Source: Octopus bimaculoides
Lineage: Eukaryota
Direction of reading: 5' to 3'
NCBI RefSeq assembly: GCF_001194135.2
Contig: NC_069009.1
Location: 10,240,530 to 10,301,954, forward strand
Length of the DNA stretch: 61,425 nt
The translations under genes were made by a program, and so were the position numbers. Positions 3,238 to 34,783 of this stretch are shown one piece after another (the first letter of the stretch is position 1; each line of letters opens with the position of its first letter). Under the pieces are notes generated by a model. It ran no database searches. It was not told the DNA's origin and saw nothing but the letters and a program-made list of their open reading frames with translations.

Positions 3238-5210
3238 TTATCTCTCATAATAAAAGAATCCATCAAAACGGTTATCTAAACATCCGTAAATCATGATGAA
3301 ATAATCCGAAACATGTATGGCCTTGATGTGGCAGACTTCAATTTCTTGAGAGCTGAGAAAGATTTCGCATTTGCTGTCTACAGATATTTGATGGATATTG
3401 TTATTAAAATCTGATATGTAAATATTTTCGCCATGGATGGTCAAGGATTTGTTGAAAATGTTTGGAAATGGTTCATCACTTTGAATCATTAGTTGTTGAC
3501 TCCTAACCAAATTGTCTCTATACCAACATAAATCGTAATGATCTTCCTTGTATTTAAGAACGACGATGTCTTCATTCGATGTCACACCCAATGCTACAAC
3601 CTTCCCCTCCTTCCCTAAATTCACTCGACCCATATACTCATACATTTCACCATAAATGTGAAGTATGTCTGCATATGACACAAACGGAGTATTACTACAT
3701 TCATTTCGAGCGTCTTCGAACACACATACCAGATTATTGTCATTCTTTTTGTACATTAAATTGTATGGTTTTTCAGTTGTGATCTTTTTTAAAAGACACA
3801 GATCTGTATTGAAGAACATCAGTTGTTTATCATCACGAATGAGGACTACAAAGGATTCATCGGTCCATTGACATATATCTTGAGCTTCTTTTTCAAATGT
3901 TTGACTGTAAAGCAGATGACCGTCTCCCCTGGTGACCATGAGAGTACATTTATGGAGGAGCACGACAATACTATTGTCTTGTAGCATAATTAGCTTAAAA
4001 GCATTAAGAAAAGAAAACATCAAATTTGAATCTAGTAAACCAGATAGGGAAAATGAAAGCGGAAACATTGCTGTTCTGTGTGGCAGTCTTCTCACTGATA
4101 TTTCATCAATTACTGACATACTCTCCGCTATGTAATTACCACGTCTCACTTCTAATCTACCTTTAGCAACTATTTCGTTTGATGTACATCTTCTTTCTCC
4201 TCCATCGTCACTGTTTTTAAGTTTATTAAATAATTCATTACTGAACATTTCCTTGTTCTTCTGAGATGTAATAGAAGGGAAATGAAGCCCAGAATCAAGA
4301 TTTGATAATGACATAGATTCCAGAACCTTCAGATGGTCCCCATCAATTTTTATAGTATCACATTCAATCATGTTGATATGTACACACCAGTAAATATTTC
4401 CCATTTTTCTCCATATTCCACCATAAGGTACTCGACTTTCCCAAACTTTATATTTCTCCAAGTCTTGTGGCTTCAATTGAAATATTTCTCGTCTGTTAGG
4501 GACTGTGATCAATATATTTGTTTCTCCAGTAAAACATACACCACCAACCAAACTTCCAAAATCTCTGTAACATAGCAACTTCCCGTCTTCATCAAATAGT
4601 TTAACATTTCCACTATTGGCTTTTTCGCACACAACTGTCTTTCCTTCATCAGAGATATCGATATCTTTTACTTGAACAGGACAATTGTTTATTTGTAACC
4701 GTGAAACGGGGAATTTTTCCCGATTAATCTTGTACAAACCTTCAATATACAAGTACGAGTCATAGCTTGCAACAAATCTCGGACCTTTACAGTTAATACT
4801 GTTGAAATCCAACGCACGTTTATAATGCCTTTCATTTAAGAATATTCTCTTGTATTCACCGTTCTGCAACAATGAGACAATACGATACTTTTTCGTGTTT
4901 TCATAGATGTTCTTCCGTCCAGTAATGTACAAATAAGTATCATCGGTTGCCATAGAGGTGTGTCGGGAATAAATGCTGTGCTTAAATAAATATAAATATT
5001 GCCCGTTAGGGTTCAGAATAGTGATGAACCTGTCGGTATTGACGATGATGTTGTCATTAGCAATAACTGAGATATGGGTGATATTGTATCTGTAGCGCTT
5101 CCAAAATAAGTCTATTTCTCTCATAATACGGACAGCTGACTGTATTTCATCGATATATATATAAAACAGGCAGTTTTCAATTTCGGGTATGAAGGCACCA
5201 CCATCAACAT

Positions 5211-5288
<78 letters not shown>

Positions 5289-8081
5289 ACACCAATAGAT
5301 TGTCGGATCGACAAGCGATACAATTGTATCTATTTTCTGTGTGGTAAGTTGCCAAGAACAATGGAAATTCCACTTTTAATGTTAACAGTTGATAGTTATT
5401 GGTCGTTATAACCAATGTGTTTGATCGCCAGCAACACATATGTCTTGGGACAACATTATTTAACTTGATAGAGTCAACAAGTTGACCATCAAAAGTTAAT
5501 ATCTTAATGTTTTGATTTGTGCTGTCATATAGAGCAACCAGGTTATTTTCTGTAATAACCAAACAACCAATCTCCATTGGATGTTTATCTCCAAAACTTT
5601 GAGGGACAACAACTTCATGAGCTTTATCAGAAACTGTGAGATCTTGTAGATACAATCTGGAAGACAACATTTCACTGAGACTGATGTTTCTAGAAAATAC
5701 ATCTACCAGATCGATGAACATGTTAATTTGACTGCTTGTAACGTGATCTCTCACTAGCAAGTCATGTTCATTTACAGCAAACATGCGGCTGTTGTCGATC
5801 AAATGAACACACATGTTATCAATACATCCACCATAGAGATTGGAGGGTGTTTTCACTTGGGACAGCAAAACACTGGGGACTATCTTACTGCTGATGATGC
5901 TTCTCCTCCTTCGCCACCTGCTGCTCCTGATGGTCTTGTAGAGGAATACTGTTTTCTTACCAACAATTAATAGCTTTAGTGTTTCGTTTTCTAATGATAA
6001 TGATTTCATTATAAAAGGAATATTAATTCTACGAATTCTTTCAACTTGATTACAATTTCTAATGGCTGAAATATCTAAATAAGATGGTTTATCGCAATAA
6101 CAAATAATGCGACCTTCACCCAGCTTACACACACGTACATAAGGCTGGTTTAATGATACACTTCTGACTGTCTTTGATAAGTTTCCGATGATCCTTAGTT
6201 GCTTCTCTCGAGGTAATGTGACACCTATCTGATTAGAATTCCATCGACATATATCTGTAGCTGTAGACGGCAGCGGTAATCTGGACACAATGTCTCCTTC
6301 ATTGGAAATGTATAACAAACAGTCATTATATATGTTGGACACCACCAACTGTCCATTCGCCAGTTGACATATTTCGGCAATGAGAAGATTGTCATTCTCT
6401 TTTTCTTCGAGACGTATATTTAAATTTCTATTATAAGGATTTTTAAAGGTTACATGAGAGTCTGACCAGTCATGGTACTTGTAAAGAAGAATCCGACTGC
6501 GTAGATCGTCTAGGACATAAGCTGTTCCTTGGAAAACAGCAGAGTGATAGCAAAAGTTTGAAGGAAGTTTCAGCTGCCATTTCCTTTGTCCAGTTGTATT
6601 GTAACATGTCATCAAAGACTCTCTCCTGAAGATAACAAAGAAATATAATGTGTCTGTGAAGACATGATGAGGGTAGCCATTGAACTCAATGTGTTTCTTG
6701 GAAAGCTCTTCACCAAAGCTTGAATAAAATAACAAGTTATGTTTCCGTTTGTCAACAACTACAAAATTAATTGGAGTAGCAGCAATGGTGACATTATCAT
6801 GTTCCAATGAAATTCTGTTTACAATGTCAACATGATCCTTTTTAATCAATAAAATATGTACCTCCACTTTACCTTCACTGGTGGTCAGAGCCAAACACCT
6901 ATTTGATATCATGTGACACATTTGAGTGTAATTGTTTCCGACGTCTATTAAATCACCTTTAATTAATTGTGGACAGGTAATATACTGAAGTTTCCTGTCC
7001 TCACTAAAAAGGACAAGAAATCTGTTTGAATCCATTCTACAAAAGACAGAAGGCTGGAGTTTAAATGTTAAACATTTTCCACCAAACTGTTGCCCTTCGT
7101 CAGTAACTAATATAGCTTTTAGATCCCGATATATAATTACTATTGAAGAGGCTGACATAGGTAGAATCGTTGTAATGTTGGAGGGATCATCAATATGGAT
7201 TTGGTTTATTAAGCTCGGGATATGGTCTTGGTGATGGTAAGACAGCTTAGGCCAAAAATCTTCATTTGTCCTAATAATATGCACAAGACCAAAACGGTCA
7301 ATCAAGTAAATATTATCTGTGCCCACACAAATATATCGAGCTTTTATCCCAATTTCTCTTTGTGACACAGAACCGTTCGGTGAAATCCTGTAAATTACAT
7401 TTCCATGCACAGCGTAAGAATAATTTCGATATACATTGAGGTCTATTGGAATATCGATGGAATGGGTCTTCAACTGAAACAAGTGTCTGCCATCTATTGT
7501 GTAACAGCTAATTCTATTTATATTTGCCAAGGCTACTAAGATATGATACTGTGGACCAACTGCTATTTTTCCAACTATTTCTTTCATACTAAATTTTTCT
7601 TCAACTTTATTTGTATCCCAGTCTATGAGATATATTGTCTTACTAAACATTTCAGTACCTACAAATGTAGAATGTTTGAAATAAGAAATTGTAAAGAAAC
7701 TATAATCCAGAGATTTTATGTGGAAACTTGTTGGATTAATGAAAACTATTTTCTTACGGAATGGAATTGTGGCTAAAACAGTGTCTTCACCAATTGTTGT
7801 CATGTCTGTGACATTAGAAGAACAATGAAAATCAAAATCACCGCCTGTTGTGGCACAACTTATCCTCAAATCTGTTGAATAGGTTACGATTCCATTGCGG
7901 ATTTCAACGATTCTTAAAACTGTGTTCATGCTCTTGGAATCATTATCAGAGTCTTTGGGCTGCAATATTTTGGACACAGCTGAGCAACGGGGACGGAATT
8001 TAGATGAATGCGACTTCATAATACTTTTACCATCAAGACGTGGTATCTGCATGTAGTGATCGTCAATTGAACTTGGTTCAT
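3238..8081 (-). CDS. Exon F (terminal, 4,844 nt): about six tandem diverged NHL/TolB-like beta-propeller modules
   Basis: Uninterrupted 1,604-aa ORF extends upstream to a strong acceptor (ttttatttctgttgttattgttattcag|AT GAA CCA) in phase 1, matching the RING exon donor. Recurring motif [DE]G.L...L....DIC.W....V.....KQL at about 7090, 6297, 5487, 4583 and 3920, with a weaker copy near 7800. Confidence 0.85.
5212..5286 (-). repeat. Perfect (AGT)25 microsatellite inside the CDS, encoding Ser25
   Basis: (act)25 on +, translated as LLVC-S25-NVDGG. Confidence 0.97.
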
Positions 8082-9639
8082 CTGAATAACAATAACAACA
8101 GAAATAAAATTATATTAAATTTCCAAAAGACATGAATGGGTTATATTAATTTGTAACAACAACTTCCTACATAATTCAAGTCACAAAAAATCAAATCTTC
8201 CCAATTTAACTAAAACATTGCACAACATTCCTAAAACACCATTTTGAAGACACTTTCCATTTCATTTCTTGTAGATAAACAAGGAAATAGCGACATCAGT
8301 GGGGTTACAGGCTGAAAACACTGATATACACCAGTGGAGTTTAGAACTGAAGAGCGATATCTGTGATGTTCTGGCAATGTATACCTTGACTACTTTAATT
8401 GTGGTCTACAGATGTACAACCACATGCTGTACAATGAGGAGATATCATATTGTAACCTGACTGCTACTACACTCTACCCCAAAAAACAAAAGTTAACTGT
8501 GTGATGTTTAAAAAGATGGAAGAATTGAATATTTGACGGGTTAGATCTGTGTGTTTTTCACTGAGGCTGTGACCAGCTGTGTATTGTTATATATATATAT
8601 ATATATATATACATAAAAGACCTGAGTAGCAATTACACAACCAGTGGTAAGATTTCTGATCTCTCTCTCTCTCTCTCCCTGACCACATGATAAACATTAG
8701 AAATTAGATAAGCCCCAGCACCAACTCTATCAATGAATGAAGTAAATAAAAATCGAGTAAACAAAACAGAAATTGCCTTTTTCCGATTTAGAGAAAACAA
8801 TTAATTGTTGATAATTAATAGTCAATAACTTGCTGTACTCCATTTTCTTAATTGCTGAGATAATTCTAAATGCTCTGACTTTAAATACCAATTAGTGTTA
8901 TACAAATATACAGATATATAGGAAACTATCGACAGCAATATAAAACCTTGTAATTACCCATGTGATCTTTTAGCAATTACTAGTGTTTACAGCCACCCAG
9001 AAACCTGTAATTATCCATTATCTCAGATGAGAGTTTGTCAGTGGAACTCCTACTTCAACATGTATGACTTTGATGTTTTTGTAAGTAATGCTGTCTTTAA
9101 TTAGCAGCCATTGCTACCATCATCACTACATTGTCATCATTTAACGTCCATTTTCCATTCTGGCAGGGTTTGTACGTTTTGTCAGGGCCTGGCTAGGGAG
9201 AAGAATGCACCAGGCTTCACTGTCTGATTTGGCAGGATTTTACAGATGGATACTTTTCCTAACACCAACAAACTTACAGTGTGATCTGGATCCACAAGCA
9301 TTGGTGGGGGTCACCAAAGAACTTGATTGAAACATGTGTCTTGTAGAAGAGATACATGGTTACCCAGTGAGAGGGGGAGGGCAAGAGAAAGAGTGAGAGT
9401 GAGTAACCAAGAAATGTTAATAAATCATTAAGCACTCTGTGACCTCACAAACTATTCAGACTCAGTCTCCATCATTTACTGTTGTCATCCTCCACCTCTC
9501 CCTCCAATCACTTTTTTTTATCCTTTCAGTCTTTGCATTCTGATTCTCCTTCTGTAATCCCTTCTTCTCTCCTCCTAAACATGTCACTTTCAGTGAACCA
9601 ACACATCATAGAGTAGTGAGGACTTTCTAATATCATGGA

Positions 9640-10044
9640 ATGTGACGCAACCTAACTACTGCTGGTGCTATGATCAAATGCTTCCACTACACACTGGAGG
9701 TGGTCGTTGGATGAGAGTTGACACCGTAAGTTTGAGAGGGAGGTTGAATCTTGCCGAGGACATGGTAATCTCTTGTAGTTCTTGTGTCACAATGAAATGC
9801 ATCCAGGACCTTTATAAAGTGGTTGGTGATAAGAAGAGCATACCACCATAAAAAGGCTGGAATGTTTAAGTGAGATGTAATCCTTAAGCAATCAATATGG
9901 ATAGTTCACTGTTAATAAGAAATGGCTTGGACAGTGACCACCCATCCAGTACATGGGAGCATAGAGAGCAGATGATAAAGGATGAGGATGATTGTACTGA
10001 AACTTGCAGAGAGCATTCTTCTTGAAAGCAAGCGAGAAAGAGAG

Positions 10045-10101
<57 letters not shown>

Positions 10102-11100
10102 NNNNNNNNNNNNNNNNNNNNNGCATAGAGAGCAGATGATAAAGGATGAGGATGATTGTACTGAAACTTGCAGAAAGTATTCTTCTTGAAAGCGAGCGAG
10201 AAAGAGAGAGAGAGAGAGAGAGTTTGTCTGAGCAGCAAAGCAAAGTCTTCTACTTGAATAAAGGCAATATTCAATGGATGTAATGGTTGAAGAGTGGATG
10301 AAAGGACAGTGAAACAACCAGGGTGTTCACAATTGGAACAATTTTCACCATCACATCTGGTTAAACAAAAGAGCCAACAACAATAATCAATCAGTAATCT
10401 TACTAAAAATGCAAAACAAACACTTTGTCATTAAATCACCTGATTACCTTTTAACAACAAAATCCTTTTGGTTCCCTATTCCAAAGGACAATATTCTTTT
10501 CTACACAAGGCCTGAAATTTTGGGGGAGGGGGCCAGTCAACCCTAGTACACAACTGGTACTCAATTTACTGACCCCAAAAGGACGAAAGGCAAAATCAAC
10601 CTTGGTGGAATTTGAACTTAGAATGTAAAGACAGACGAAATACCGCTAAGCATTTCACCTGGCATTCTGATGTTTCTGCCACTTTGCCACCTTCCCAAAA
10701 GACAATATTAACTCTACAGTGAAATGTCTTATTTTTCATAAATAATTTGCATTTTATAATTGTGAGACATTCCTACCATCAATGGTCAACTGTTGACCAT
10801 TAGGGTTTCCGACAGAACATCTTTATACTTTCTACAGTGGTACAATAAGTTTGAGAGGAACGTTTAATCTCTTGGAGGAGATGACAATCTTTCTAGAACC
10901 TGTGCCACAATGATATTTATACAGGGCCATTTAGAAAGTGGTTGGTGTTGGGAAGGGCATACCACCATAGAAAAGCTAAAACGTTTAAGTGTTCCTCAAC
11001 CAATCATGGTGGACAGTAACTCTAAATAAGAACTGACTTGGACAGTGACCATCCACCCAATCCATGGGGGCATGGAAATCAGATAAACTATGAAGAGAAT
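9640..11100 (+). repeat. Two old copies (about 9640-9990 and 10770-11100) of one dispersed repeat
   Basis: Shared blocks taagtttgagagg, aaagtggttggtg...cataccaccata and cttggacagtgacca. Confidence 0.6.
10491..10691 (-). mobile_element. tRNA-derived SINE, same family as 61143-61374
   Basis: gaccccaaaaggacgaaaggcaaa...ggaatttgaact...ccgctaagcatttc matches the other copies. Confidence 0.8.
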
Positions 11101-11729
11101 ATCATTTGTTGTATTGTATCGTGCAGCCACTATCTATCTTAAACAAAGAGAGAAAGATAGCTACCATGTTTAGGTCCACAACCAAATAGACTAACCCTCT
11201 CTTTAGTAAGATATCCTACATAATCTAACAACGTTCCAATTATCTTATTTAATTATCATTTGATAACACCTTTTGTCCATTAATTTAAACTTTCCTTTCA
11301 AATATTTGTGTCAAATCTCTGACAAGTCATTCTTCTCTCATCTCTAGACTTCACGAACCAGCATCCATCTCCTCTTTTACTTAATTCCAAAACATACACC
11401 TGCTCTCTTTGTTAAACGTTGCTGCTGATAATCGTTAATTCTAACTCCCCCACATCACTGTTCAGCAGAATGTTATCTGATTCAGGAAATATTTGAAGAC
11501 CTTTCAATGTCATTCATCCTCCTTAATAAAGCAGCTTTCTTTCCAGATGAGCAATGATTAATCCCAAACAGACAATGATAACAGGTGTCCTAAAACACTG
11601 TACCATTGCACAAAACCTCAATCACTACATATAAATGTACATCTACATATTATTGTAAAAGTAAAATATCTGAAATGGTACAAAAAACTGGTTCTCAGGA
11701 ATTTAGCATATTGCTATCAAACGTCATCA

Positions 11730-13130
11730 ATGCATCCAACTAAAGTGTCCAACCCTTTCTGTGATGTCCCCTCTATCAATGTGGAGGCTCTCAATAGGGT
11801 GAAAACTTATTTAGCAGCAAGTGTGAGGACATAGCTGATAGAATAAAATCTGGCTTGGATCCATTACAGGTACAACAAAGTCTGAATGTGTTAAGAGAAA
11901 CATTGGGTACAAGAGGCATCAGATGTGCAAGAGAGAAGATTATGCTGGTAAGAACATGAGATGTATGTGAATGAGAGGACAGAGGTGCTAAATGTAGAGA
12001 GAACCTCAGAAAGACGGGGTTGAAATGGGTAGAAATGATCTCCAGATATTGAAACTAACAAACAGTTATACATATTCTGACTAAAGAATATGCAACCTGC
12101 TTGATATGTAAGAAGGGTGGTGGTAGAAACTCCATACGATGTACCCAGTGCAGGTTTTGTACACATAAGAGGTGTGTGCTATCGCAGGAAGGTTAACAGA
12201 GAAAATGATCTTTGTGTGAGGCAAATATGTGGGTAAAATGAGCAATAAAAATGCACAGACAATAGACTCCCTCAAATGTTTGGGGAGATCATTAGAAGTA
12301 GTAGATAGCTTCTGTTACTTAGCATACCCAAGTTTACATTGGTAGAGGAAGTTCTGAAAGTGTAGTTGCTACAATGAGAACTGGCTTGGCAAAGTTCAGA
12401 TAACTTCTGCCTTTGTTTGCAACTAAGGGCCTCTCCCTCAGAGTGAAAGGCAGATTGTATGATGGCTGTGTACGTACAACTATGATACATGGCAGTGAAA
12501 CATGGGCTTTTGCTACAGAGAACTTGTAAAGATTTGAAAGAAATGAAGCTAACATGGTCTGCTGAATGGGTAATTTCAGTGCACATGCACGACACTGCAA
12601 ATGGTTTAAGAGGAAAACTGGGTATAAGAAGCATCGAATGTTGTGTGCAAGAGAGAAGACTGTGCTGGCTGGGTCATGTGATGCGTATGAATGAGGACAG
12701 CTGCATAAAGAAGTGCCAGGCTTTAATTGTGAAGGGGACCTGTGGAAAGGATAGACCCTGTAAGACACAGGATGGTGAGAAAGGATCTTCAGATGCTGGG
12801 CCTTAGTGAGGAAATGACATGGATTCGAGAGATGTGGCAATTTGCTGTATTCGAAATAACACATCAAGCAAAGTAAAATCTCTGTGTTTAAACATACAGT
12901 CTTGTCTTTTGCAGGTACCAGTGCCACATAAAATTCACCCATTTCTGTGCTGCCTAAACACACCTGTACAGGTAAAAAGCACCCAGCACACTTTGTAAAG
13001 TGGTTGGTGTTAGGAAGGGCATCCAGCAGTAGAAACCATGCCACAACAGACAATTGAAATCTGGCCAGCTCCATGTTGAACCGTCCAACCCATACCAGCA
13101 TGGAATACGGATGTTAAATAGAGATGACAA
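11730..13130 (+). mobile_element. Degenerate RTE-clade LINE, 3' half of ORF2 plus tail
   Basis: Frames read LEVVDSFCYL, TKGLSLRVKGRLYD.CVRT.MIHGSETW and ERRLCWLGHVMRMNEDSCIKKC. Confidence 0.85.
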
Positions 13131-13778
13131 TGACGAAATGATGTATATATTGTAACTTGAGACAATCTGGGTACACAACCCAATGAGAGATGGGTTAGAT
13201 CAAGCGACTCCAGCTGAAAACTTTAAGATGATAAAATCTTAAAGAGGACAACTTTGCAGAATATGTTGTAATTTCTACATTTTACCAACATTCCAAAACA
13301 ACTGAATTAACAGTGAGACTGGCTAAGAGTCAGACCCTTAAACTCTCAGTTGAGATTTTGTCATTGAAATTCTTACATTACAAAGCTGACTCTGATGTTG
13401 TAGGAAGTACTGTTGTCCTTAATTATCAGTTTCCCAAGATACTTATAAATCATTAACCTCATATAAAAGCTGACAAATGTAAAAAGTTGATATTTACTGC
13501 TGGGACCATGGAGATGCATTGATATTTCGTTTATGATTCAGTAAAATGCATTAGTCTTATGTTGCAGACAGTACTCTTTTGATGTGTGACAAGTTTCCAA
13601 CTTGAATAAAGACAATATTCAGTGGGTGTAGTCATGGATATACTACCAAAGAGAAAAGACACCTGGGACATCTTTTATCATATGTCTGTCAGATTATGAC
13701 AGATTTGGGTTGACACAACATTATTCCATACCATAAAGTCATGTGACAAACAGACAAATCATCAGATAATACTCTTAC

Positions 13779-13918
13779 CAACTCTGCTTTTGCTCTCTAT
13801 ACATGTTTTACACTCGGGGCATCTTTGAAGTTGAATTTTGCCACAATCTTCGCATACCACAGTATGTCCACAGGGTTGTAACTCCACGTTGGCTTCATTC
13901 TCTTCACAAAGCATACAT
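13779..13918 (-). CDS. Exon E: MIB/IAP-type RING-HC zinc finger
   Basis: tttgtccacag|A TGT ATG...GTT G|gtaaga. CMLCEENEANVELQPCGHTVVCEDCGKIQLQRCPECK has spacing Cx2Cx11CxHx3Cx2Cx7Cx2C. Confidence 0.92.
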
Positions 13919-14339
13919 CTGTGGACAAATATAAAAACACATATCACCTATAACATTCATTTCTAACAAATATTATATGTTTGTTTTATGTTTACGATAT
14001 AGGATATTATGAGACACCAGAGTGAGGTGCATGGCTTAGAGGTTAGGCTGTTGGATTCTTAAAGTAAAACTGTGGTTTCGGTTCCTGGACAAGGCAATGT
14101 GTAAAGTTCTTTAGCAAAACACTTCAATCTAGGTTTGCCTTGCATACAAACCTACCCCTAGTTATAACTGAGTCCATGTTCATTGATCTACAAACATTTT
14201 CTGACACCTTGTCAACTTCAAATGTGTTCCTCCAAAACAATTTTCTTTGCCTCAGTTGATTGGATCAAAACCCAAACTCATTAGATTCACCTACTGAGCT
14301 ATGTGCATACTGTTTAGCCTCTTATAAGGACAGGTGTGA

Positions 14340-16780
14340 TAAATTGAGCTCTTTGTCATTTACCACCTGATACACACCTGAAATTACATATTGTGGGTCC
14401 TTTAAATCATGACTCAATACCAGATGAAAAAGGGATGCAAACTGGTCTGAGGATATCGAACTAACAATGGGTAACACTGGAAAAGACCCAGGAAACTAAA
14501 CAAGAACGATACATCCTCTTCCATGAACCATGACAGATATAAATCGAGATACAAATTATTGTTTAAAAAACCAACAGTTTATGCAATAAAATTCACTATT
14601 TTTGATTCTTAAGTTAAAAGTACTGATTCCAATCTCATTTGTTAAACCTGGACACATTCTTTACTGTGCAATGGTGTTTTTAGCATGGCTGGCTACATTT
14701 TGTTTCACAAAGACCTCTTTCATTACCATGGAGGTGGTGCGATGGTCTATGCTTGCTCAAGCTTCTCAGAAATTGCTTGTGAAGATTTAAACCAGTCACA
14801 TAAAAGCACAACATTTACCATCCTTGAAACTTTTTAGAGCTGAATCTATGAAAACAGTCACCTATGTTTTCATACTCGTGATTTCAATTACCCAATATTG
14901 ATTAGGAAATCTTTCACTGGCCACAAAATGCAACTGATTTCCTTCATTCAATGTTATATTCAAACTAATCCCAAGTAGTCATCTCTGCTATTTACCACTG
15001 CTCCTGAAATTATCAGCCTCAATACTGAGGAACACTTAGGTGACTCTGGTCATACTCCAATCCTGCAAAGATGTGTCTAATGGATAGAAAGAAAAGCCAC
15101 CATAACCTCCAGACTGCTTCGTTTTCCTGGAACAATGCTGACTGGAACTCCTATTGTACTGAGGTATAGTTCCCTGACTGGCTTCAACTTTATAATTCTG
15201 GAGATGTCAAGACTAACCTTCAGCACATCCATCCTTAATTCATGAATAAGTGTCGGTACCATACACATGTTTTAGAAGCCTTAATATGTGAGAGACTGCC
15301 AGGAAATATTGATGAGATGCTGGACGTGATAAAAGAACAGAGGATAAAAGAAGAAGGTGCAACATGGTACCCTGCCATATTAAAGGGGTGACAATTGTAC
15401 CATTTCCACTGCTACTGCGATCAAATTCCATAAAACCTGTGGAATTTACTTCTGCAAGATTGCAATGCTAATTGAAGCATATGTGCAATTATGCATCCTC
15501 TTGTCTTGGTGGTGTTATTCCTCTGCTTCTCAACGAGTGCATCCTTTTTCTACTGCACCAGCTTTTTGTCCTCTTCTAGTTCAGCTTAGCCCAGTTTAAG
15601 GGAAAGTTGCCAGTATTATTCCCCGTTCAAAAGGGGGTTCCCAGACATCACCTGTTGATTACCTTCCAGTCAGTCTCACAGAATTAATGGATCTACAGGA
15701 AGACATTCTGAAACATCTGGAACCCTCATAAGCTTATTCAACTCCAACCATTTGGATTTATCCCTAACTATAGCTGCATTGAATTTCTTCACATATGGTG
15801 GTTCATGGATGGATATTATCTATATCAACTTCACCAAAGTCTTTAATTCCATGCCACACCCATCAATTACACCACAACTGTCTGGAATGGGTGTGAGGAC
15901 TAAATTTTATAACTGCTTAAAATACTTACATTCTCAGTTGAAAAGGCAAAGTTACAATACTAAGCTAACATTCTGCACCCAATACAGAAAATCTACAAGG
16001 AACTGCTCTTGGTTTTCTGTTGCTCCTTGTATGTATCAGCTAAATACATGCCAACAATCTGCTATAGATCTTTCCTTCAATCTGACTGGAATACAATGCA
16101 GTAATGGACTGCTGATTGGAAACTCAAGCTGGCTATAGACAGGCGCACCACTATATACTTCGGAATGAAAATTCCAAAATTTACCAAGTCTCTCTACAAC
16201 ACCAAACCTCAAACGTCTGCAGGTGAACGTGACCTTAACATTAATGTCAACAATGATCTGTAATACGTGAACAATTTTTCTAAAAATCATCAGAAATGCC
16301 AAAGGTATCTTAGCATTGTTCAGTAAAACCTCTCTGCCTGTCAATTTGTCAAGTTATCAGTTTAAAGTTATACATGGCTGTCATACATCTACACTTACAG
16401 TTTACATTTCCAATCTGGAATCCCCATCTTGTCCAGAATATCTATTCAGAGAAGAACAAGAACGCAAATGCTATCAGTTAGTTACCATATCTTGAATAGA
16501 TTGCTTCTCTTTGTCTTGAAGCATGTTATTATATGCTATATACCTTTCCTTCAATCTGATCAACAACCAGGCAAATACTCTCTGTTAGTCGCCATATATT
16601 GAATGTATTATTTCGCTGGGTATCAGCACACTAAAGTTTTGATGTCTAGCAGCTAATCTGGTATAATCCCAAAAGTTTATCCACCATCTTGCCAACAACA
16701 ACCTTGGCAACATTTTTGAATTCAAAATCTCTGCCACCATCAGACATTCTTATAAAATTAAAATAAAAAACAGTGCAGCA
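14340..16780 (+). mobile_element. Highly degenerate CR1/L2-like LINE (RT region)
   Basis: Remnants KVASIIPVQKG, IIYINFTKVFNSMPH and a PQG..LG-like segment; many stops. Confidence 0.55.
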
Positions 16781-17899
16781 GCCATGATTTTTCAAAATAC
16801 TTTATCTCATTCAGAATTATTTAAGCACACAACAAACTACCTGAGTCAGCTGTTAGCTGTCAGGATACTGCATCGTTTCAAAATATTCTTTTCTTACCGA
16901 AATTCACCAACATTACTCCTGTGGTGCGAATATATAGTGAGTACAAGGTGTTGATGTGGTTGCGTGTATGTTATTTACAAGAGTTCATACGGAGATGAAG
17001 AATAAATTCAAGACCTATATATTTACTACATAAAAATATATTTTATTTACTGGTCGATGATGATACATAGAATTAATGTGCAGCATCTAGTTAAATGAAG
17101 TAATCTATGCAAGGAAGTGCAGAGATAGGAAATATAGAAATAATAGCTAAGCGGTGGTTTTCAGTCATGTGGCATAGAGAAACAGATGGACATAGCAATG
17201 ACATGAATGGCTTTAAGTCAAATTGACTAAGAAGCAAAGAGCAGGGTTAGCAAGCTGCTTTTATTAATGGAATGCTAGACATTCTAGAAACTTCCAAGAG
17301 AAACGCCAAGCTACTTGAATAATTAAGAATTGCATCTTATGACACAGATGCCGTGAGAAACTTAGTGAAGGGAGATTACTCTATATTTTTTCTTGAAAGG
17401 GAGATCATTCAACTATTTAGCTACATAGACGACTATACTCCTGATGTGCCTTTTTATGCCTCTTTTACTGCCCCTCTTTTATTCTATGTATCGTGCATGT
17501 ACTCCTAGCTTTCATAGCTGTCTTTCTTTACTTGACTAAACACTGCTTTCCATCCCCTCTTTTACCCTTTTCCAGTAAGTTGTAGTACACCTGAACTCTG
17601 TATACATTATGTTATTACAATACTTGCATAAAAGATTATTTGCTAATAAAGGAGTCCAACCAATGCTTGTCTATCGGATAAAACAGAGCTATATTTATAC
17701 AGTTCAGAAATCAACATCTAAAGACAATATCTGAATTTCAACAGACAAAGAAAGTTATGCATATTCTCATAGAGAATAATGTGTCTTGTTCATCAGCAGC
17801 TAACAAATGTATAGCAAAGTAACAGCTAAAACTAATAAAATACAGGAGTCTAATGTGACTAAGAGGCCTAAAAGACTAAGAATGGTATATGTGTTACCA

Positions 17900-18110
17900 G
17901 AATGATTTATGCTTCCTGGCAATTTTGTTCTGTGAAGTTGTGTGTCAGTGTTCTACCGAAACTGGCCTTGCCTGTGCTGGTGTCACTCAGCCCACTCTGC
18001 TAGGCATGCCAACACAGACAGACGTTTGGTGTAGACTTCTGGCAGGCTCCCTTCAAACCATCCAACTCGTGCCAGGATGGAAACGGACGTTAAGCAATGA
18101 TGATGATGAT
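17900..18110 (+). mobile_element. RTE/SINE 3' tail ending in (GAT)n
   Basis: aaaccatccaactcgtgccaggatggaaacggacgttaag followed by gatgatgat. Confidence 0.55.
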
Positions 18111-18547
18111 GATATATACACACACTGTTAGGGTGTGTAGTTTATTACAAAACCTTTCATAATAATGAATTGATTGGAACAGAGAAGAGAGAGAACATGT
18201 TGGTAGACAGATAAATTCCAGTTGTTTTTATGTAACAATTTCAAAATGTGTTCATTCATTTTATTGTTTAGTTCTACATTTTCCTATTGGTCACAAATCT
18301 TTAGAATAGGGAACTAAGAAAGGTAGATGGGTGGTAGACAGTGAGGTACAACTGCCAACCAAAATAGTGCTCTTCATGGGATCACTTAACAACTGCATTT
18401 TGTTTATTGTTCTTCATACTACTGTTGTGTGGCCTTTGATCAAGACACTGTAGCAGTATAATGTATTGGTAGAATTAAAATTAAACAAACATAAACATGA
18501 TTATATACAAAATAGAAAATATACTGTCACTGCCAATGAATATTTAC

Positions 18548-18723
18548 TGTGGTGGGAATAATACTTTTAATTTTCCTTCCAAATCTGCATTCCCAACGAG
18601 GTCCAATGGAGCTATATTCTTATTGTTTCTCCAGTAAAAGTTTGCTCCCTGGTGGGCTAGATAGCTAGCAACTCCTACACCAGAAAGTCTCTCTTCGATC
18701 GTCAACTCAAGCTTAGCACAGTA
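18548..18723 (-). CDS. Exon D: last degenerate ankyrin and linker, MIB-like
   Basis: tttgtcatttgtag|TAC TGT GCT...CCA CCA CA|gtaaat. YCAKLELTIEERLSGVGVASYLAHQGANFYWRNNKNIAPLDLVGNADLEGKLKVLFPP resembles the MIB segment [29 protein letters not shown]. Too short for the supplied ORF track. Confidence 0.88.
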
Positions 18724-20498
18724 CTACAAATGACAAAGTATAAAATGATGATTACAATATTACACCAATATACTTTGTAGAAACCCAAATTACACAACAG
18801 TTCAACTACATTTACAAAGAGTTTGCGTCTCCAGCGCTTCAACTGATTACACAATATTCATTTCCTACATCATCTCTAATTGAATCCATTTCCCATTTTC
18901 ACTTGTTTTTAGTCTGTTTTCAACATTATGACATGTTTTAAATATATGATATATGGTCATTATATTAAACAGAACAAACATTATTGATTAACATCAAGTT
19001 CATTGGTAATTAATGTGTAAATAATCATTTGCCAATCACAAATATGACAAGATATTCAATAAAAAACAATTCAAAAGCAAATCATAGCATCAAGTCAAAT
19101 ATATGGAATATAATGGAAGAAACATCCCAAATAATTTAACACAACAAACTAACAACAACCTGTCTATATAACTAGCTTGGTGAATCCATAACTGGCCATC
19201 ACACAAGAAATACGGAGGAGTATTGTATATATAAATATAACACAACAACATGACAACAAACAAGTTATATGAGAACTAAGAACACTTAGAACAGACACAA
19301 CAAAACCAACCACACCACACAGACATATCCAAAAATAACAACAATGTTTCCATAATTAATAAAGAAACATCTTTGGATAATGAAGGTGAAGTAAAGGAAG
19401 TAAGAATTGATATCACAGTTGAGGCAGCACACCAACACATTATAGTTAATAAACTGCTGAAACTGTTAGTCTGAAAGACAATTCCAGTTGGGTGGGTAGC
19501 TGACTGCAAGAGTGGCTTCTTCTCACCAAAGTAGACATTACTTACAATTTACATATGATCATCAAATGTCTGAAATATAGTCACACATCAGTGGTGACCT
19601 TTATTTATATGNNNNNNNNNNNNNNNNNNNNNNNNNNNNNNNNNNNNNNNNNNNNNNNNNNNNNNNNNNNNNNNNNNNNNNNNNNNNNNNNNNNNNNNNN
19701 NNNNNNNNNNNNNNNNNNNNNNNNNNNNNNNNNNNNNNNNNNNNNNNNNNNNNNNNNNNNNNNNNNNNNNNNNNNNNNNNNNNNNNNNNNNNNNNNNNNN
19801 NNNNNNNNNNNNNNNNNNNNNNNNNNNNNNNNNNNNNNNNNNNNNNNNNNNNNNNNNNNNNNNNNNNNNNNNNNNNNNNNNNNNNNNNNNNNNNNNNNNN
19901 NNNNNNNNNNNNNNNNNNNNNNNNNNNNNNNNNNNNNNNNNNNNNNNNNNNNNNNNNNNNNNNNNNNNNCTATCACGTCACACAGACTTCTCCTCCTCCC
20001 CGTTTCATTGTTATTTGGGAATATCTCCTCTTTGTCATTGGTCACCTTTCCTTCACACTGGATGGCTGTGTTATATAGCCAACAAGATGGGTTACCTTCT
20101 TTACAGTGGAGAGAGCGTACCTTTGAGGGTGAAAGGCGATGAAATAGAGTTAGTTACATAATATAACTACGGTTATCTGGAGAGACTGGATTACTTAGTA
20201 CTAATGGAAGAGAGGTGGATGGGAGTGAGTAGACATGGCAAGCAATGTCTGCCTGTTTCTCTATTTTTCTCTCTTTATCTAACACACATACAAGCTCACA
20301 CTTGTAGCACTCATCCTCCTCCTCATCATTTAATGTCCATTTTCCATGCTGGCGTGGGTTCAATCATTCAGCAAGAGCTGGCCAACTGCAGAGCTGCTCA
20401 GGCACCAACTGCCAGCTTTGATATGGTTTCTACGGTTGGATGCCTTTCCTAATGCCAACCACACACACACACATTCACAAACAATTTTAAAAACTTAC

Positions 20499-21533: not shown

Positions 21534-22680
21534 TATGAGATTCAAACAAAAGTCTTGTCCTATTGTCTAGATGAAATTTTAGACGACATTCATTGAATTA
21601 TTGCCTTTTGTTATCCCTCATGGAATGAAACAACGAGTAGTTTATATTTTGTTCGAGTTAAAAAACTATTGTCCACAATCTTCTTTGATATTCACCCTCC
21701 AATATTCGTCCCAACTAAGGAATATGCTTTACTCTACGAGTTTCATAAAGGTGTCAATGGAAGTGTAACAGCAAAGTCAATTCAAAGCACTTCAGGAGAT
21801 GATGTAGTGAGTGAAAGAAGTAGCAGAAGGTGGTTTTTCCATATCTCAAGTGGGAAATTCAGCTTAGATGACGAGCCAAAGAAGGGCCGTCCAAAGCTCT
21901 CGATTCCCATGGGCTGGATGCTGTTATTACATCAAACCCTGTCACTAGTGCTAAAGAACTCGCCAAGAAATTTAAGGTTAGCCACATGACTATCCTACAT
22001 GAACTGAAAAGAATTGGAACGGTTTCATTAGCTGGAAAATGGGTCCCACATAAACTGTCTCCAGAGAATCAGCAACAATAAATTACACATGTTGTGAATC
22101 ACAGCTTACACAACAACAACAACAACAACAGATACCATTTTTGGGTGAGCTGATGAGCATTGGATCCTTTATGCCGTCAGCAATGGATCCTTCATGGAAG
22201 CAGACCTCCTCAGCAACAAAGAGGACAACTTTGGCCAAAGAACATGTTGAGTGTAACTTGGGATATTCAAGGCATTATCCATTGCAAACTGTTATACAAT
22301 AATCAAACAAACAATGCCAATCTCTATTGCAATCCACTTTGTTGATTGAAAGCGGTTTTGGACAAAATTCTCCTGTCCTTAGTCAATAGAAATGGGGTCG
22401 TTCTGCATCACAATAAAACACACCCACAACTGTACAATTGAGTAAAGATCTCTTAGAAGTGCTCCAATGGGAGAAATTGCTTCATCCTCCATATTCTCCT
22501 GACCTTGCACCTTCTGATTATCACATGTTTAGGGGATTACAGAATCATTTAAATGGGATTAGGCTGACATTGAGGGAAGGGGCTGCAAGTGAATCGGTAT
22601 TGAACTTTACATCAAAACCTAAAGAATCTTACTAGTGCAGCATCTATAAGCTTGTTGACAGATGGAATGAGGTCCTACCA
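21534..22680 (+). mobile_element. Degenerate mariner transposon
   Basis: LYEFHKG...RRWF...LDDEPKKGRP, WVPHKL and HPPYSPDLAPSDYHMFRGLQNHL motifs with frameshifts. Confidence 0.9.
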
Positions 22681-28480: not shown

Positions 28481-29084
28481 GTGTGTGTGGGGGGGGGTAG
28501 GTAGGGAGAGAGGACAAGGGAAGTTAATTCATTATGTATTGATGGTAATGGATTAACGAAGCAATAGGGACTGAGTACAGCATGCCCTCATTTAGCTTTG
28601 TTTCNNNNNNNNNNNNNNNNNNNNNNNNNNNNNNNNNNNNNNNNNNNNNNNNNNNNNNNNNNNNNNNNNNNNNNNNNNNNNNNNNNNNNNNNNNNNNNNN
28701 NNNNNNNNNNNNNNNNNNNNNNNNNNNNNNNNNNNNNNNNNNNNNNNNNNNNNNNNNNNNNNNNNNNNNNNNNNNNNNNNNNNNNNNNNNNNNNNNNNNN
28801 NNNNNNNNNNNNNNNNNNNNNNNNNNNNNNNNNNNNNNNNNNNNNNNNNNNNNNNNNNNNNNNNNNNNNNNNNNNNNNNNNNNNNNNNNNNNNNNNNNNN
28901 NNNNNNNNNNNNNNNNNNNNNNNNNNNNNNNNNNNNNNNNNNNNNNNNNNNNNNNNNNNNNNNNNNNNNNNNNNNNNNNNNNNNNNNNNNNNNNNNNNNN
29001 NNNNNNNNNNNNNNNNNNNNNNNNNNNNNNNNNNNNNNNNNNNNNNNGACAGACAGACCTTAAAAGGTGATGATGATCATTATT

Positions 29085-29888: not shown

Positions 29889-29920
<32 letters not shown>

Positions 29921-30254: not shown

Positions 30255-31146
30255 TGAAGGTGGGGACCCAAAACAACCCAGAATTTTGCAATATATTTTC
30301 TTTGCTTACTTTTACATATTAACACTATTATCACCGTCAAAGTATTCTCCATTTGAAGCAATGCATCGACCCAGACATGTTTTCCACTATTTGTAGCAGT
30401 GCTGCTTTTTGAAGCCTCCATCATATTTTTCCTTGCCTCTGCCACATCTGCAAATTCTGTAGCACCAGCTTTTGTCACTATTGATGACCTTTGATAAAAG
30501 ATACGGATTGACTTCCAGCTTGTTCTTTCAGTTCACCAAATGCATTCAACCATGACTGCTTTTGATCTTCTGTGAGCAAGTGAGGCATAAATTTTGCTGC
30601 AACACTTTTCATTTGCTATTCCTTGCTCAAAATTCCTTGACAGGAGTTCCAGGACTCACCAATCATATCAACAAGTTCGTCAATTGTTCGGTGACAGTCT
30701 TCCAAAATCAGTTCATGAATTTTCATGATGTTTTCATTTATTTGGGAGCTCGATGGCTGCCCTGAATGAGGTTCGTCCTCAATCGACAAGTGACCATTCG
30801 AAAAGCATGGAAACCACTCGTGAACTTGTGTTTTGCTCATGGCAGTGTCCTTCCAAGTTGTTTGAAGCACGACAACTGTTTCGGCTGCTGTTTTCTCCAG
30901 CAGAAAACAGAATTTCATGGAAGCATGCTGTTCCTTCATTTCAGCCATTGCAAAAATCGATGAACAGGGGAGGAGCCCTGCAAAACAAAGATGCACCACA
31001 TGGTAATAGGACCACACCCAAAGTTGCCGGTTGGCAGACTGATGCCTGAGTATCACATCAAGTGGCTTCTAGCAGCAGAAGCCTAAACTTCAATGGCTTT
31101 GCCCCACAGAGAACGTTTCCGGTTACTTTTGGGTACCCCCGCGTAT
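30255..31146 (-). mobile_element. Internally deleted mariner with degenerate TIRs
   Basis: MKFCFLLEKTAAET...EDEPHSGQPS, VINSDKSWCY (ITGDESW-like) close to RCIASNGEYFDGD. TIR-like ends GGGGACCCAAAACAACCCAGAA and GGGGTACCCAAAAGTAACCGGAA. Confidence 0.85.
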
Positions 31147-31570: not shown

Positions 31571-31916
31571 ATGATTCTGCATTTAGCCCAGGGTCAGAGG
31601 AAAGAGGAAAATTAAAAGAGAGGGAGGTGAGGTGTTTTACATGGAAAGAAAGAAAGAAAAGAGAGGATTTGAACTTGAAACGTTGACGTAACGAAGGATG
31701 AGATGAAATAAAGAATCTAGTCAGGTAACAACAACAACAATTATAATTATGATGATTAATTAATGAAGTTAGATTACAGTGTCATTAGAGTGTGAGAGAG
31801 AGAGAGAGAGTTAAAGCATGACGACCCATGGTGGGATTATGACATGAACGACTCAAAACAAGAAAACAAACATTACTGAAACAGATTTGGATAATCCATA
31901 TCCATTGGGGACTTAC

Positions 31917-34783
31917 TCTTGAACTGCCAGGTGTAAAGGTGTGTTACCGCGTTCGTCCATTTTATTGGCATCGATGCCATTCTGTTGTAGGAGAGGTTTT
32001 ATAGTGTCTGTTTGTCCATTAAAAGAGGCATGATGTAGAGGTGTCCAACCACGGATGCTCACAGCACTGACATCAGTGCCATGTTGTTGTAGGAGAAGTT
32101 GAATACTGCCTGTGTGTCCGTTCTGACAGGCAAGATGTAGTGGTGTCCAACTATGGATGGTCACAGCCCTGACATCAGTGCCATTCTGTTGTAGTAGAAG
32201 TTTTATAGTGTCTGTGTGTCCCTTATAAGAGGCAAGATGTAGAGGTGTCCAACCATCGATGGTCACAGCCCTGACATCAGTGCCATTTTGTTGTAGGAGA
32301 AGTTGAATAGTGTCTGTGTGTCCATTCTGAGAGGCAAGATGTAGAGGTGTCCAACCATCGTTGGTCACAGCCCTGACATCAGTGCCATTTTGTTGTAGGA
32401 GAAGTTGAATACTGTCTGTGTGTCCATGCTGAGAGGCAAGATGTAGAGGTGTCCAACTATGGATGCTCACAGCACTGACATCAGTGCCATTCTGTTGTAG
32501 TAGAAGTTTTATAGTGTCTGTGTGTCCGTTATAAGAGGCAAGATGTAGAGGTGTCCAACCATCGATGGTCACAGCCCTGACATCAGTGCCATTTTGTTGT
32601 AGGAGAAGTTGAATAGTGTCTGTGTGTCCATAATAAGAGGCAAGATGTAGAGGTGTCCAACCACAGTTGTTCACAGCCCTGACATCAGTGCCATTTTGTT
32701 GTAGGAGAAGTTGAATAGTGTCTGTGTGTCCATTCTGAGAGGCAAGATGTAGAGGTGTCCAACCATCGTTGGTCACAGCCCTGACATCAGTGCCATTTTG
32801 TTGTACGAGAAGTTGAATAGTGTCTGTTTGTCCATTCTGAGAGGCAAGATGTAGAGGTGTCCAACCATCGTTGGTCACAGTCCTGACATCAGTGACATTT
32901 TGTTGTAGGAAAAGTTGAATAGTGCCTGTGTGTCCATTCCGAGAGGCAAGATGTAGAGGTGTCAAACCTGTGTTGGTCACAGCCCTGACATCAGTCCCAT
33001 TTTGTTGTAGGAGAAGTTGAATAGTGTCTGTGTGTCCATTCTGAGAGGCAAGATGTAGAGGTGTCCAACCACCGTTGGTCACAGTCCTGACATCAGTGCC
33101 ATTTTGTTGTAGGAGAAGTTGAATAGTGTCTATGTGTCCATTCTGAGAGGCAAGATGTAGAGGTGTCGAACCACGGTTGTTCACAGCCCTGACGTCAGTG
33201 CCATTTTGTAGTAGGAGAAGTTTAATTGTGTCTCTGTGTCCATTATAAGAGGCAAGATGTAGAGGTGTCCAACCATCGTTGTTCACAGCACTGACATCAG
33301 TGCCATTTTGTTGTAGGAGAAGTTGAATAGTGTCTGTGTGTCCATTCTGAGAGGCAAAATCTAGAGGTGTCGAACCACGGTTGTTCACAGCCCTGACATC
33401 AGTGCCATTTTGTTGTAGGAGAAGTTCAATTGTATCTGTGTGTCCATTCTGAGTGGCAAGATGTAGAGGTGTCCAACCATCGTTGGTCACAGCCCTGACA
33501 TCAGTGCCATTTTGTTGTAGGAGAAGTTTTATAGTGTCTGTGTGTCCATTCCGAGAGGAAAGATGTAGCGGTGTCAAACCTGTGTTGGTCACAGCCCTGA
33601 CATCAGTGCCATTTTGTTGTAGGAGAAGTTGAATAGTGTCTCTGTGTCCATTCTGAGAGGCAAGATGTAGAGGTGTCCAACCATCGTTGGTCACAGCCCT
33701 GATATCAGTGCCATTTTGTTGTAGTAGAAGTTGAATAGTGTCTGTGTGTCAATTCTGAGAGGCAAGATGTAGAGGTGTCCAACCACCGTTGGTCACAGCC
33801 CTGACATCAGTGCCATTTTGTTGTAGGAGAAGTTGAATAGTGTCTGTGTGTCCATGAAAAGAGGCAACATGTAGAGGTGTCCAACCATCGTTGGTCACAG
33901 CACTGACATCAGTGCCATTTTGTTGTAGGAGAAGTTGAATAGTGTCTGTGTGTCCATTCTGAGAGGCAAGATGTAGAGGTGTCGAACCACGGTTGTTCAC
34001 AGCCCTGACACCAGTGCCATTTTGTTGTAGGAGAAGTTGAATAGTGTCTGTGTGTCCATTCCGAGAGGCAAGATGTAGAGGTGTCGAACCACGGTTGTTC
34101 ACAGCCCTGACATCAGTGCCATTTTGCTGTAGGAGAAGTTCAATTGTGTCTGTGTGTCCATTCTGAGAGGCAAGATGTAGAGGTGTCCAACCATCGTTGG
34201 TCACAGCCCTGACATCAGTGCCATTTTGTTGTACGAGAAGTTGAATAGTGTCTGTGTGTCCATTATAAGAGGCAAGATGTAGAGGTGTCCAACCATCGTT
34301 GGTCACAGCACTGACATCAGTGCCATGTTGTTGTAGGAGAAGTTGAATAGTGTCTCTGTGTCCATTATAAGAGGCAAGATGTAGAGGTGTCGAACCACGG
34401 TTGTTCACAGCCCTGACATCAGTGCCATTTTGTTGTAGGAGAAGTTTTATAGTGTCTGTGTGTCCATTCTGAGAGGNNNNNNNNNNATTTTGTTGTAGGA
34501 GAAGTTTTATAGTGTCTGTGTGTCCATTCTGAGAGGCAGGATGTAGAGGTGTCCAACCATCGTTGGTCACAGCCCTGACATCAGTGCCATTTTGTTGTAG
34601 GAGAAGATGAATAGTGTCTGTGTGTCCATTATAAGAGGCAAGATGTAGAGGTGTCGAACCACGGTTGTTCACAGCCCTGACATCAGTGCCATTTTGTTGT
34701 AGGAGAAGTTTTATAGTGTCTGTGCGTCCATGGATAGAGGCAACATGTAGAGGTGTGCAACCTTGGTTATTTTTCTGAGTGAC
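31917..34783 (-). CDS. Exon A: ankyrin tandem-array exon, containing one in-frame TGA and a 10-N gap
   Basis: Acceptor tttatcttttttag|GTC ACT CAG (VTQKNNQGCTPLHVAS), donor CAA GA|gtaagt. The two supplied ORFs (33749..34672 and 31913..33694) are in the same frame and separated only by a TGA. Confidence 0.85.
31958..34771 (-). repeat. Coding tandem repeat: 27 x 102 bp (34-aa ankyrin units)
   Basis: Period 102 (ggcaag at 32231 and 32333). Consensus TNDGWTPLHLASQNGHTDTIQLLLQQNGTDVRAV. Length 2,814 = 27x102 + 60 nt of gap overlap. Confidence 0.95.

Follow-up and report, generated by a model that had tools for sequence, protein, structure and literature searches.

Mind bomb ligases (MIB1 and MIB2) carry N-terminal MIB/HERC2 domains flanking a ZZ zinc finger, together with REP/SH3-like repeats, followed by ankyrin repeats and C-terminal zf-C3HC4_3 RINGs, of which MIB2 has two and MIB1 three. 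The TRIM-NHL ligases (TRIM2, TRIM3 and TRIM71/LIN-41; compare also the NHL domain of Brat) join a RING, a B-box and a coiled coil to one six-bladed propeller used for recognition, and the tandem propellers of DDB1, LRP4/LRP2, IFT-A and UTP proteins serve as binding platforms. Here we analyze a minus-strand locus in a 61,425-nucleotide (nt) stretch of the Octopus bimaculoides genome (GCF_001194135.2, contig NC_069009.1, 10,240,530-10,301,954), which we call the window and whose own numbering is used for coordinates throughout. Six exons of this locus join into one frame for an ankyrin array, a RING and about six predicted beta-propeller-like domains. We give a somewhat better than even chance to the reading that this is a real, lineage-specific composite octopus gene, a RING E3 ligase formed by exon capture. 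The exons are as follows:

Exon A, 34783-31917, minus strand: the ankyrin-array exon, which starts at an AG acceptor.
Exon B, 29681-29645, minus strand: 37 nt encoding the second helix of an ankyrin repeat (..QCYDVVTLMLSQ).
Exon C, 20708-20499, minus strand: 210 nt of ankyrin repeats.
Exon D, 18723-18548, minus strand: 176 nt for an atypical final ankyrin repeat plus the linker leading to the RING.
Exon E, 13918-13779, minus strand: 140 nt encoding a complete C3HC4 RING, with the phase-1 donor GTTG|GTAAGA.
Exon F, 8081-3238, minus strand: 1,613 codons plus TAA with no internal stop, entered in phase 1.

All six exons have AG before and GT after, the acceptors are preceded by 17-23 pyrimidines in 28 positions, and the joined coding sequence of 8,274 nt forms one frame of 2,757 codons plus TAA. 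The canonical sites and matching phases proposed in a preliminary description of this DNA are thus confirmed. That description had also added exons of 37 and 176 nt that are missing from the open-reading-frame (ORF) track, and these are real: the joined A-E protein aligns with the O. bimaculoides 'MIB2 isoform X1' (P0041) over 229 amino acids (aa) with 0 gaps (62% identity, E 2e-98), which validates both, and exon B is also covered by a gapless alignment to P0040. Aligned to paralogues, the joined protein lacks no residue at its junctions, and the exon boundaries match those in the gene model of protein P0027. The splice sites of exons B-E are all kept in the O. vulgaris orthologue, with a nonsynonymous-to-synonymous rate ratio (dN/dS) of 0.46 for these exons. 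Pfam searches of the translated exons revealed only Ank (E 5e-43) and one zf-C3HC4_3 RING. The earlier claim of a single reading frame holds for the joined exons, but the description overlooked an in-frame TGA in exon A, which interrupts that frame, and the absence of the start codon and 5′ end from the window. Exon A directly follows an acceptor TAG, so it is not the first exon and the model has no start codon. By orthology with O. vulgaris (locus L005, 35110-35271) the next exon falls at a break in the assembly, which indicates that the 5′ end of the gene is missing from the window:

Assembly gap, 35138-35237, no strand: expected site of the next upstream coding exon.

Two upstream Ank-RING coding exons, including the start codon, are expected from L005 at or near this gap and that at 38987-39231; neither is detectable in the window.

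The RING of exon E has the pattern C-x2-C-x11-C-x-H-x3-C-x2-C-x7-C-x2-C, with all eight zinc ligands present, and scores 35.5 bits against zf-C3HC4_3 (PF13920; cut-off 27). Its closest solved relatives are the RINGs of cIAP1/2, MYLIP and XIAP. It therefore appears to be an IAP/MIB-type RING resembling active IAP-type RINGs, which would confer E3 ligase activity; one complete RING was found, as first described. Homologues of exons A-E comprise about 60 octopus proteins of 210-440 aa with names such as 'MIB2-like' and 'MIB1-like'. The 3′ end of exon A through exon E reads as a member of this 'E3 ubiquitin-protein ligase MIB2-like' family (P0042 and P0041), with 54-63% identity, gapless alignment, identical exon boundaries and the same post-RING phase-1 donor. 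The array exon has 3.5 units in the orthologue and at least 27.5 in the window, and exon F occupies the place of the linker and Death-domain (PF00531) exons with which the family normally ends. On sequence grounds we assign exons A-E to this octopus-expanded Ank-RING-Death family.

The segment 13316-32257 is collinear, exons and introns alike, with O. vulgaris OX597842.1 (L005) at 84-89% nt identity. The gene there encodes P0042, a 438-aa protein that starts with Met and contains about nine ankyrin repeats, a RING and a Death domain, the Death exon lying 7.4 kb after the RING exon. The Ank-RING gene of another O. vulgaris locus, L001, was ruled out as the orthologue of exons A-E at 67-74% nt identity, compared with the 84-89% for L005.

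The likeness to Mind bomb lies in ankyrin repeats followed by a zf-C3HC4_3 RING, and databases name the family after MIB2; the ankyrin domain of MIB1 (PDB 8v0e) matches with E 2.5e-20 over 143 residues. The Pfam content of the complete orthologue and more than 50 paralogues is only Ank, zf-C3HC4_3 and, usually, Death. MIB/HERC2, ZZ and REP domains occur neither in the complete orthologue nor in any paralogue, and Pfam found none in the translated window exons, from which the 5′ exons are missing. Mind bomb proteins have two or three C-terminal RINGs, whereas the window gene has one that is not C-terminal and the family tail is a Death domain. The resemblance is limited to the Ank-RING tail, and the gene does not appear to be a genuine Mind bomb. 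Two proposals of the preliminary description fall with this comparison, namely that the gene was built on a Mind bomb scaffold and that its distal RINGs had been swapped out: the parent is an octopus-specific family of Ank-RING proteins (250-440 aa) that lacks MIB/HERC2 and ZZ and normally ends in a Death domain rather than distal RINGs.

The array of exon A spans at least 2,807 nt and contains 27.5 units of 102 nt (34 aa; pattern 'LLLQQNG.DV.AV..DGWTPLHLAS..GH'), counted after collapse of an assembly overlap described below. The units show a mean pairwise identity of 91% with 0 indels, and Tandem Repeats Finder reported a period of 102 with 24.5+2.7 copies and 90% matches. The orthologous O. 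vulgaris exon (L005 35723-36079) is only 357 nt long, equal to 3.5 units. Because 27.5 near-identical units stand against 3.5 in the orthologue, the array can be assigned as young and lineage-specific from these alignments, in agreement with the array gain first proposed. No annotated protein carrying the array was found by homology search, in which generic ankyrin proteins dominate and the best match is 51% identical. Differences from the unit consensus (91 nonsynonymous and 20 synonymous) are concentrated at positions 5, 7, 9, 17 and 25, the canonical binding-face positions of ankyrin repeats. This suggests selection on binding, although the excess is no proof of it because copied units are not independent events. 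One gap interrupts the array:

10-N gap, 34477-34486, minus strand: inside exon A, with the 50 nt on each side identical.

Since the flanks share exactly 50 nt, the gap is an unmerged overlap of contig ends, a point missing from the preliminary description. Once it is collapsed the sequence is 60 nt shorter and falls into an exact 102-nt register without change of frame. The frame holds as written, with the overlap collapsed, or with any whole number of hidden units; with this gap inside the array, the unit count is a lower bound. Three further gaps are intronic (10102-10122, 19612-19969 and 28605-29047), and that at 19612-19969 has flanks that are collinear and contiguous in O. vulgaris, where about 600 nt of intron without any exon stand opposite it.

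Searches with exon F returned 39 family matches at E<=5.7e-262 with 96-100% coverage, all from Octopus or Argonauta (O. vulgaris, O. sinensis, O. bimaculoides and Argonauta hians), including O. bimaculoides LOC106868082, many O. vulgaris CAI97... entries and A. hians Ahia01_000013500. More than 20 'uncharacterized' proteins of about 1,650-1,900 aa match exon F along its whole length at 45-57% identity, and its orthologues are 83-87% identical to it. An exhaustive HMMER search of 1.84 billion representative proteins gave 28 matches, and every one with a checked source is octopod. Proteins of this family, about 1,700 aa long, share the six-domain layout of exon F. Its paralogues are single-exon genes with an N-terminal region of their own of about 120-170 aa, in place of which exon F has a splice acceptor; a typical member, P0008, is one uninterrupted 5,352-nt ORF (locus L002) with an N-terminal region of about 120 aa. 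In a 'DDHYMQIPR' subfamily the N-terminal region is likewise replaced by a splice acceptor. The propeller part is no new growth and is better explained as a captured member of a pre-existing, normally intronless and stand-alone octopod family. Relative to O. vulgaris, exon F has a dN/dS of 0.35 at a synonymous divergence (dS) of about 0.15, and its indels are multiples of 3 except for one private frameshift per copy. A transposable-element origin of exon F was rejected on the absence of enzymatic domains, the clustering of paralogues on few chromosomes or contigs, and purifying selection.

Pfam found no significant family in exon F or five paralogues; all it reported was a poly-Ser artefact and hints of NHL and WD40 below threshold, and the family profile gave nothing significant against PDB sequences. 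The sub-threshold NHL hints comprised PDB entries for Brat (E 0.04), TRIM71 and TRIM2/3, and a Pfam NHL score of 18.5 against 20 bits in P0110. Self-comparison of the profile with hhalign revealed internal repeats of about 270 aa (576-869 resembling 846-1170). AlphaFold2 was run on exon F in two halves, the cut falling within domain 3. The halves reached predicted local distance difference test (pLDDT) scores of 76.9 and 67.3, and consist almost entirely of short beta-strands, with low-confidence linkers between the domains. The top 50 Foldseek matches in the PDB are all tandem beta-propellers (IFT-A, LRP4/LRP2, Utp21, DDB1 and EML1; E 1e-21 to 1e-15). The predicted domains are as follows:

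Domain 1, 7252-7929, minus strand: aa ~52-277; all-beta and propeller-like by AlphaFold2 (pLDDT ~80-93), DSSP strands and Foldseek; boundaries approximate.
Domain 2, 6475-7227, minus strand: aa ~286-536; 24 strands, which fits six four-stranded blades.
Domain 3, 5548-6390, minus strand: aa ~565-845; the most conserved in the family, with an Arg-rich loop at aa 717-730.
Domain 4, 4738-5547, minus strand: aa ~846-1115; broken by a 25-Ser tract at 5212-5286.
Domain 5, 4003-4671, minus strand: aa ~1138-1360; low-confidence loop at aa ~1260-1310; the least certain domain.
Domain 6, 3241-3999, minus strand: aa ~1362-1614; all-beta, pLDDT ~80-93.

Domain 3 was modelled with confidence in its first half only. 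The 25-serine run in domain 4 varies in length between species, and the O. sinensis copy loses its frame there through a 23-nt difference. Exon F is thus predicted to form about six tandem beta-propeller-like domains, six being an estimate, and the propellers are probably six-bladed and NHL-like. The internal repeats, all-beta models and tandem-propeller matches bear out the roughly six propellers in about 1,600 aa of the preliminary description.

The best Foldseek matches (DDB1, the YWTD propellers of LRP4/LRP2, and the WD40 propellers of IFT-A and UTP proteins; probability 1.0) are only 7-11% identical to exon F, with no detectable sequence homology. Differing domain orientations and the unreliable packing between domains in the AlphaFold2 models keep their TM-scores low (0.17-0.3). 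With the TRIM-NHL ligases the gene shares the principle of a RING combined with a six-bladed propeller for recognition. Those proteins have one propeller, a B-box and a coiled coil, whereas the window gene would have six propellers, neither of the other modules (Pfam) and an IAP/MIB-type RING; NHL matches for the exon F family are never significant. The absence of the MIB/HERC2-ZZ and B-box/coiled-coil modules places the gene outside both Mind bomb and TRIM-NHL.

The composite reading depends on one junction, across the following interval:

Proposed intron, 8082-13778, minus strand: 5.7 kb, from the RING exon to exon F.

We infer that in O. bimaculoides the RING exon donor (13779) splices to the exon F acceptor (8081), because the donor is conserved, the acceptor is conserved and sister-species gene models join at the same acceptor. 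Both sites are phase 1, and the donor is conserved in L005 and across the Ank-RING family. In every family member examined that extends past the RING exon ('..RV' or '..EF'), further exons follow, encoding short linkers and a Death domain or, in P0040, a second RING, which indicates that the donor is an ancestral family feature and not a chance GT. Tblastn with 25 family tails (E<=5) detected no Death-domain, second-RING or linker mini-exon in the window and matched only exon F and the RING. Neither another tail exon for the RING exon nor another 5′ exon for exon F was found in the window.

The exon F acceptor and its polypyrimidine tract are identical in O. vulgaris. The acceptor lies 29 nt upstream of the first ATG (8052), and the sole difference from O. 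vulgaris between the two (8053-8081) is an in-frame 18-nt insertion (EPSSID). Homology to paralogues runs past this ATG, which is Leu in the paralogues, and ends at the AG acceptor 10 codons upstream, so the ATG is no ancestral start. The 250 nt before the acceptor are 93-94% conserved, compared with 85-89% for other flanks. Two independent annotations contain at least eight gene models that use this acceptor, in phase 1, to reach exon F. Some come straight from a RING exon (P0027, XP_036356076.1, '..GRGRV|DDHYMQ'; P0130, '..SKSEF|DDHYMQ'), others through post-RING linker exons (P0045/P0133 and P0106/P0131/P0121/P0132). Exact look-ups gave no record for the exon F ORF of the window, P0045 or P0130. 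In the sister-species models four different RING exons are paired with nearly identical exon F copies. The fusion models of O. sinensis (XP_036356076.1/LOC118761994) and O. vulgaris (CAI9742791.1, CAJ1099277.1 and CAJ1099278.1) share the junction, acceptor and phase with the window gene, but they have other paralogous RING partners, no long ankyrin array and interrupted exon F copies. The proposed junction is therefore one that gene models in sister species already use. The architecture, which had been called undescribed, is indeed absent from the searchable literature, but public annotation of O. sinensis and O. vulgaris already contains it in unnamed predictions. It is plausible that exons A-F form one transcription unit.

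Comparison with O. vulgaris revealed a mosaic origin for the locus. The block that contains exon F (~1900-10716) is orthologous to loci L001, L003 and L004 (80-93%). These lie on other sequences, with 44 kb separating exon F from another Ank-RING paralogue in front of it. The sister-species exon F copies (L001 58697-63548, L003 18568-23429 and L004 9989-14813) are 97-98% identical to one another in O. vulgaris and lie on different sequences. Six-propeller and Ank-RING genes often occur on the same sequences (the 11.99-Mb sequence of O. bimaculoides, the 21.3-Mb of O. sinensis, and the 12.0-Mb and 29.2-Mb of O. vulgaris), which hints that the two families are physically co-clustered.

Several repeats and remnants accompany these exons. 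Between the RING exon and exon F, O. vulgaris L001 (15000-58000; CATOCA020000001.1) contains about 40 kb of tandem 4-9-kb units, each with a mini-exon '..PKFEDK.VQT..EP.GEYK..', and the window keeps remnants of one or two such units (~10700-11700). The proposed E-F intron also contains a LINE-like (long interspersed nuclear element) fragment at 11706-13315 (..RRLCWLGHVMRM.. motif; ORFs at 12334-13101, minus strand, and 12489-12806, plus strand). Its flanks are adjacent in L005 (48445|48448), which makes it a clean lineage-specific insertion; dispersed copies of about 70% identity occur in all loci compared. Two mariner/Mos1-type transposase fragments lie in introns A-B (30619-31056, minus strand) and B-C (21669-21986, plus strand) (HTH_48, E 5e-7 and 2e-9). 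Downstream of exon F, in the opposite orientation, 789-1675 (plus strand) resembles the C-D intron of Ank-RING genes (81% to L005 42033-42378; 70-74% to L005 and L001); a neighbouring or inverted paralogue may have left it behind, and no exon was detected in it.

A number of observations weigh against a functional fused gene. IAP-type RINGs usually act at the extreme C-terminus, and the RING here is internal. Tblastn with paralogue N-termini found no start codon or 5′ exon upstream of 34783 in the window, and the non-independence of the array units weakens the case for selection on binding. The array contains an in-frame TGA at 33751-33749 (minus strand; model codon 345), in unit 10; all other units read GGA (Gly) at this point. 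A genuine nonsense mutation would explain it, as would a wrong base in a short-read-assembled repeat, and the O. bimaculoides copy may be crippled by it. On the exon F side, a typical family member stands alone as a single-exon gene, ab initio prediction may account for part of the sister-species gene models, and protein P0002 gives the orthologue a start of its own (MQIPR...), while P0003 uses unrelated 5′ exons. The three sister-species copies examined are broken as well: that of L001 has two stops and a +1 frameshift insertion, that of L003 one stop and a 7-nt deletion, and that of L004 loses its frame at the poly-Ser tract. Decay of the cassette is therefore possible. These private frameshifts and/or stops also explain why public gene models skip parts of exon F. 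Together with the array TGA, the damage is open to either reading, cassette decay or assembly errors. Finally, the switch in orthology at 10716-11390 falls within 'linker-unit' repeats common to both kinds of locus.

Two separate genes would account for some of these points: the Ank-RING gene would end in a Death or other exon outside the window or in a gap, and exon F would be expressed independently, from ATG 8052 or from non-RING 5′ exons. The normally intronless, stand-alone state of six-propeller genes, the RefSeq entry P0002 with its MQIPR start, the unrelated 5′ exons of P0003 and the Death exon of the O. vulgaris orthologue all fit this arrangement, and the strong conservation of the 250 nt upstream of exon F would also suit a promoter. 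We nonetheless regard it as rather unlikely, because the ATG is no ancestral start, the perfectly conserved acceptor and pyrimidine tract are separated from that ATG by an indel that preserves the frame, the models of two annotations enter at the acceptor from RING or linker exons, and for neither exon is an alternative partner detectable in the window.

An equally improbable explanation is a decaying relic, that is, a unitary pseudogene or one processed by rearrangement, in which the TGA is real, any fusion transcript would be a target of nonsense-mediated decay and the apparent architecture would lack a function. The TGA itself, the frameshifts and/or stops in every sister-species exon F copy examined and the lack of any annotated protein with the exon A array or the exact exon F agree with such a relic. 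It is harder to reconcile with 1,613 codons of exon F that stay open in AT-rich DNA, with the dN/dS values of exon F and of exons B-E, and with 26 of 27 array units that are intact and free of indels; moreover, a single G-to-T change in a gapped array of 90% identity could well reflect faulty assembly or consensus calling, or an allele that is segregating.

An assembly chimera, in which two paralogous loci sharing linker-unit repeats were fused so that the RING exon and exon F are no true neighbours, is very unlikely even though the two halves map to different O. vulgaris chromosomes or contigs, the switch lies in sequence repeated at both kinds of locus and the assembly is gap-rich with unmerged overlaps: the switch and the E-to-F join sit within uninterrupted, gap-free sequence (10123-19611), which points to paralogous loci having truly exchanged or duplicated sequence, similarity of the repeats at the switch reaches only 70-82% from one locus to another, the 21-N gap nearby (10102-10122) has flanks that are contiguous and collinear in two O. 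vulgaris loci, the adjacency of the LINE flanks in L005 makes the contig collinear across that insertion, and O. vulgaris exon F copies also lie behind Ank-RING genes, with at least three different partners, so that movement of the block between such loci is demonstrably real.

On the reading of a composite gene formed by exon capture, two changes set the locus apart from its orthologue. The 34-aa unit of exon A has multiplied in tandem, from about 3.5 copies to 27.5 or more. A block of about 9 kb, found at other loci in O. vulgaris, lies where the orthologue has its linker and Death exons; it carries a 1,613-codon exon from an octopod-only, normally intronless family, with a 3′ splice site in place of the N-terminal ~120 codons. 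With exon F about 5.7 kb behind the RING exon, the conserved phase-1 donor would splice to the phase-1 acceptor, giving a product of at least 2,737 aa with about 31 ankyrin repeats, one RING, a disordered linker of about 60 aa and six tandem propellers. Such a protein could act as a single-chain RING E3, whose RING would recruit E2~ubiquitin while the ankyrin array and/or the propeller stack would bind a substrate or ligand. A large binding platform would then stand where the parent family has its Death-domain signalling output. By analogy, the gene may work like known RING-plus-repeat ligases, with the Ank-RING arrangement of Mind bomb and the RING-NHL principle of TRIM-NHL.

Neither the octopod Ank-RING-Death 'MIB2-like' family nor the six-propeller orphan family appears in any paper found in the searchable literature. 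An immune role for the gene, raised in the preliminary description, is speculation. In a bolder proposal, which we consider doubtful, exon F is a duplicating 3′ 'receptor cassette' copied behind Ank-RING genes, giving a combinatorial, fast-turnover family of giant E3 ligases that recognize non-self or selfish elements. On this view the window, O. vulgaris and O. sinensis would together show no fewer than four distinct RING partners, and a hypervariable ankyrin array and a six-propeller stack would do the recognizing. If true, the cassette family would be an octopod-specific analogue of the TRIM and NLR expansions, in which Death output has been traded for direct ubiquitination of bound targets.

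Should the fused transcript prove unreal, the locus would still be a warning about gene models built on repeat-rich cephalopod assemblies. If it is real, the locus offers a clean, datable exon capture, in which a RING ligase gene took over an intronless orphan gene as its last exon and a 1,600-aa propeller platform took the place of a Death-domain output, with a 27-unit ankyrin array arising in the same gene. For cephalopod genomics the locus is a concrete and testable candidate for lineage-specific machinery of recognition or ubiquitination.

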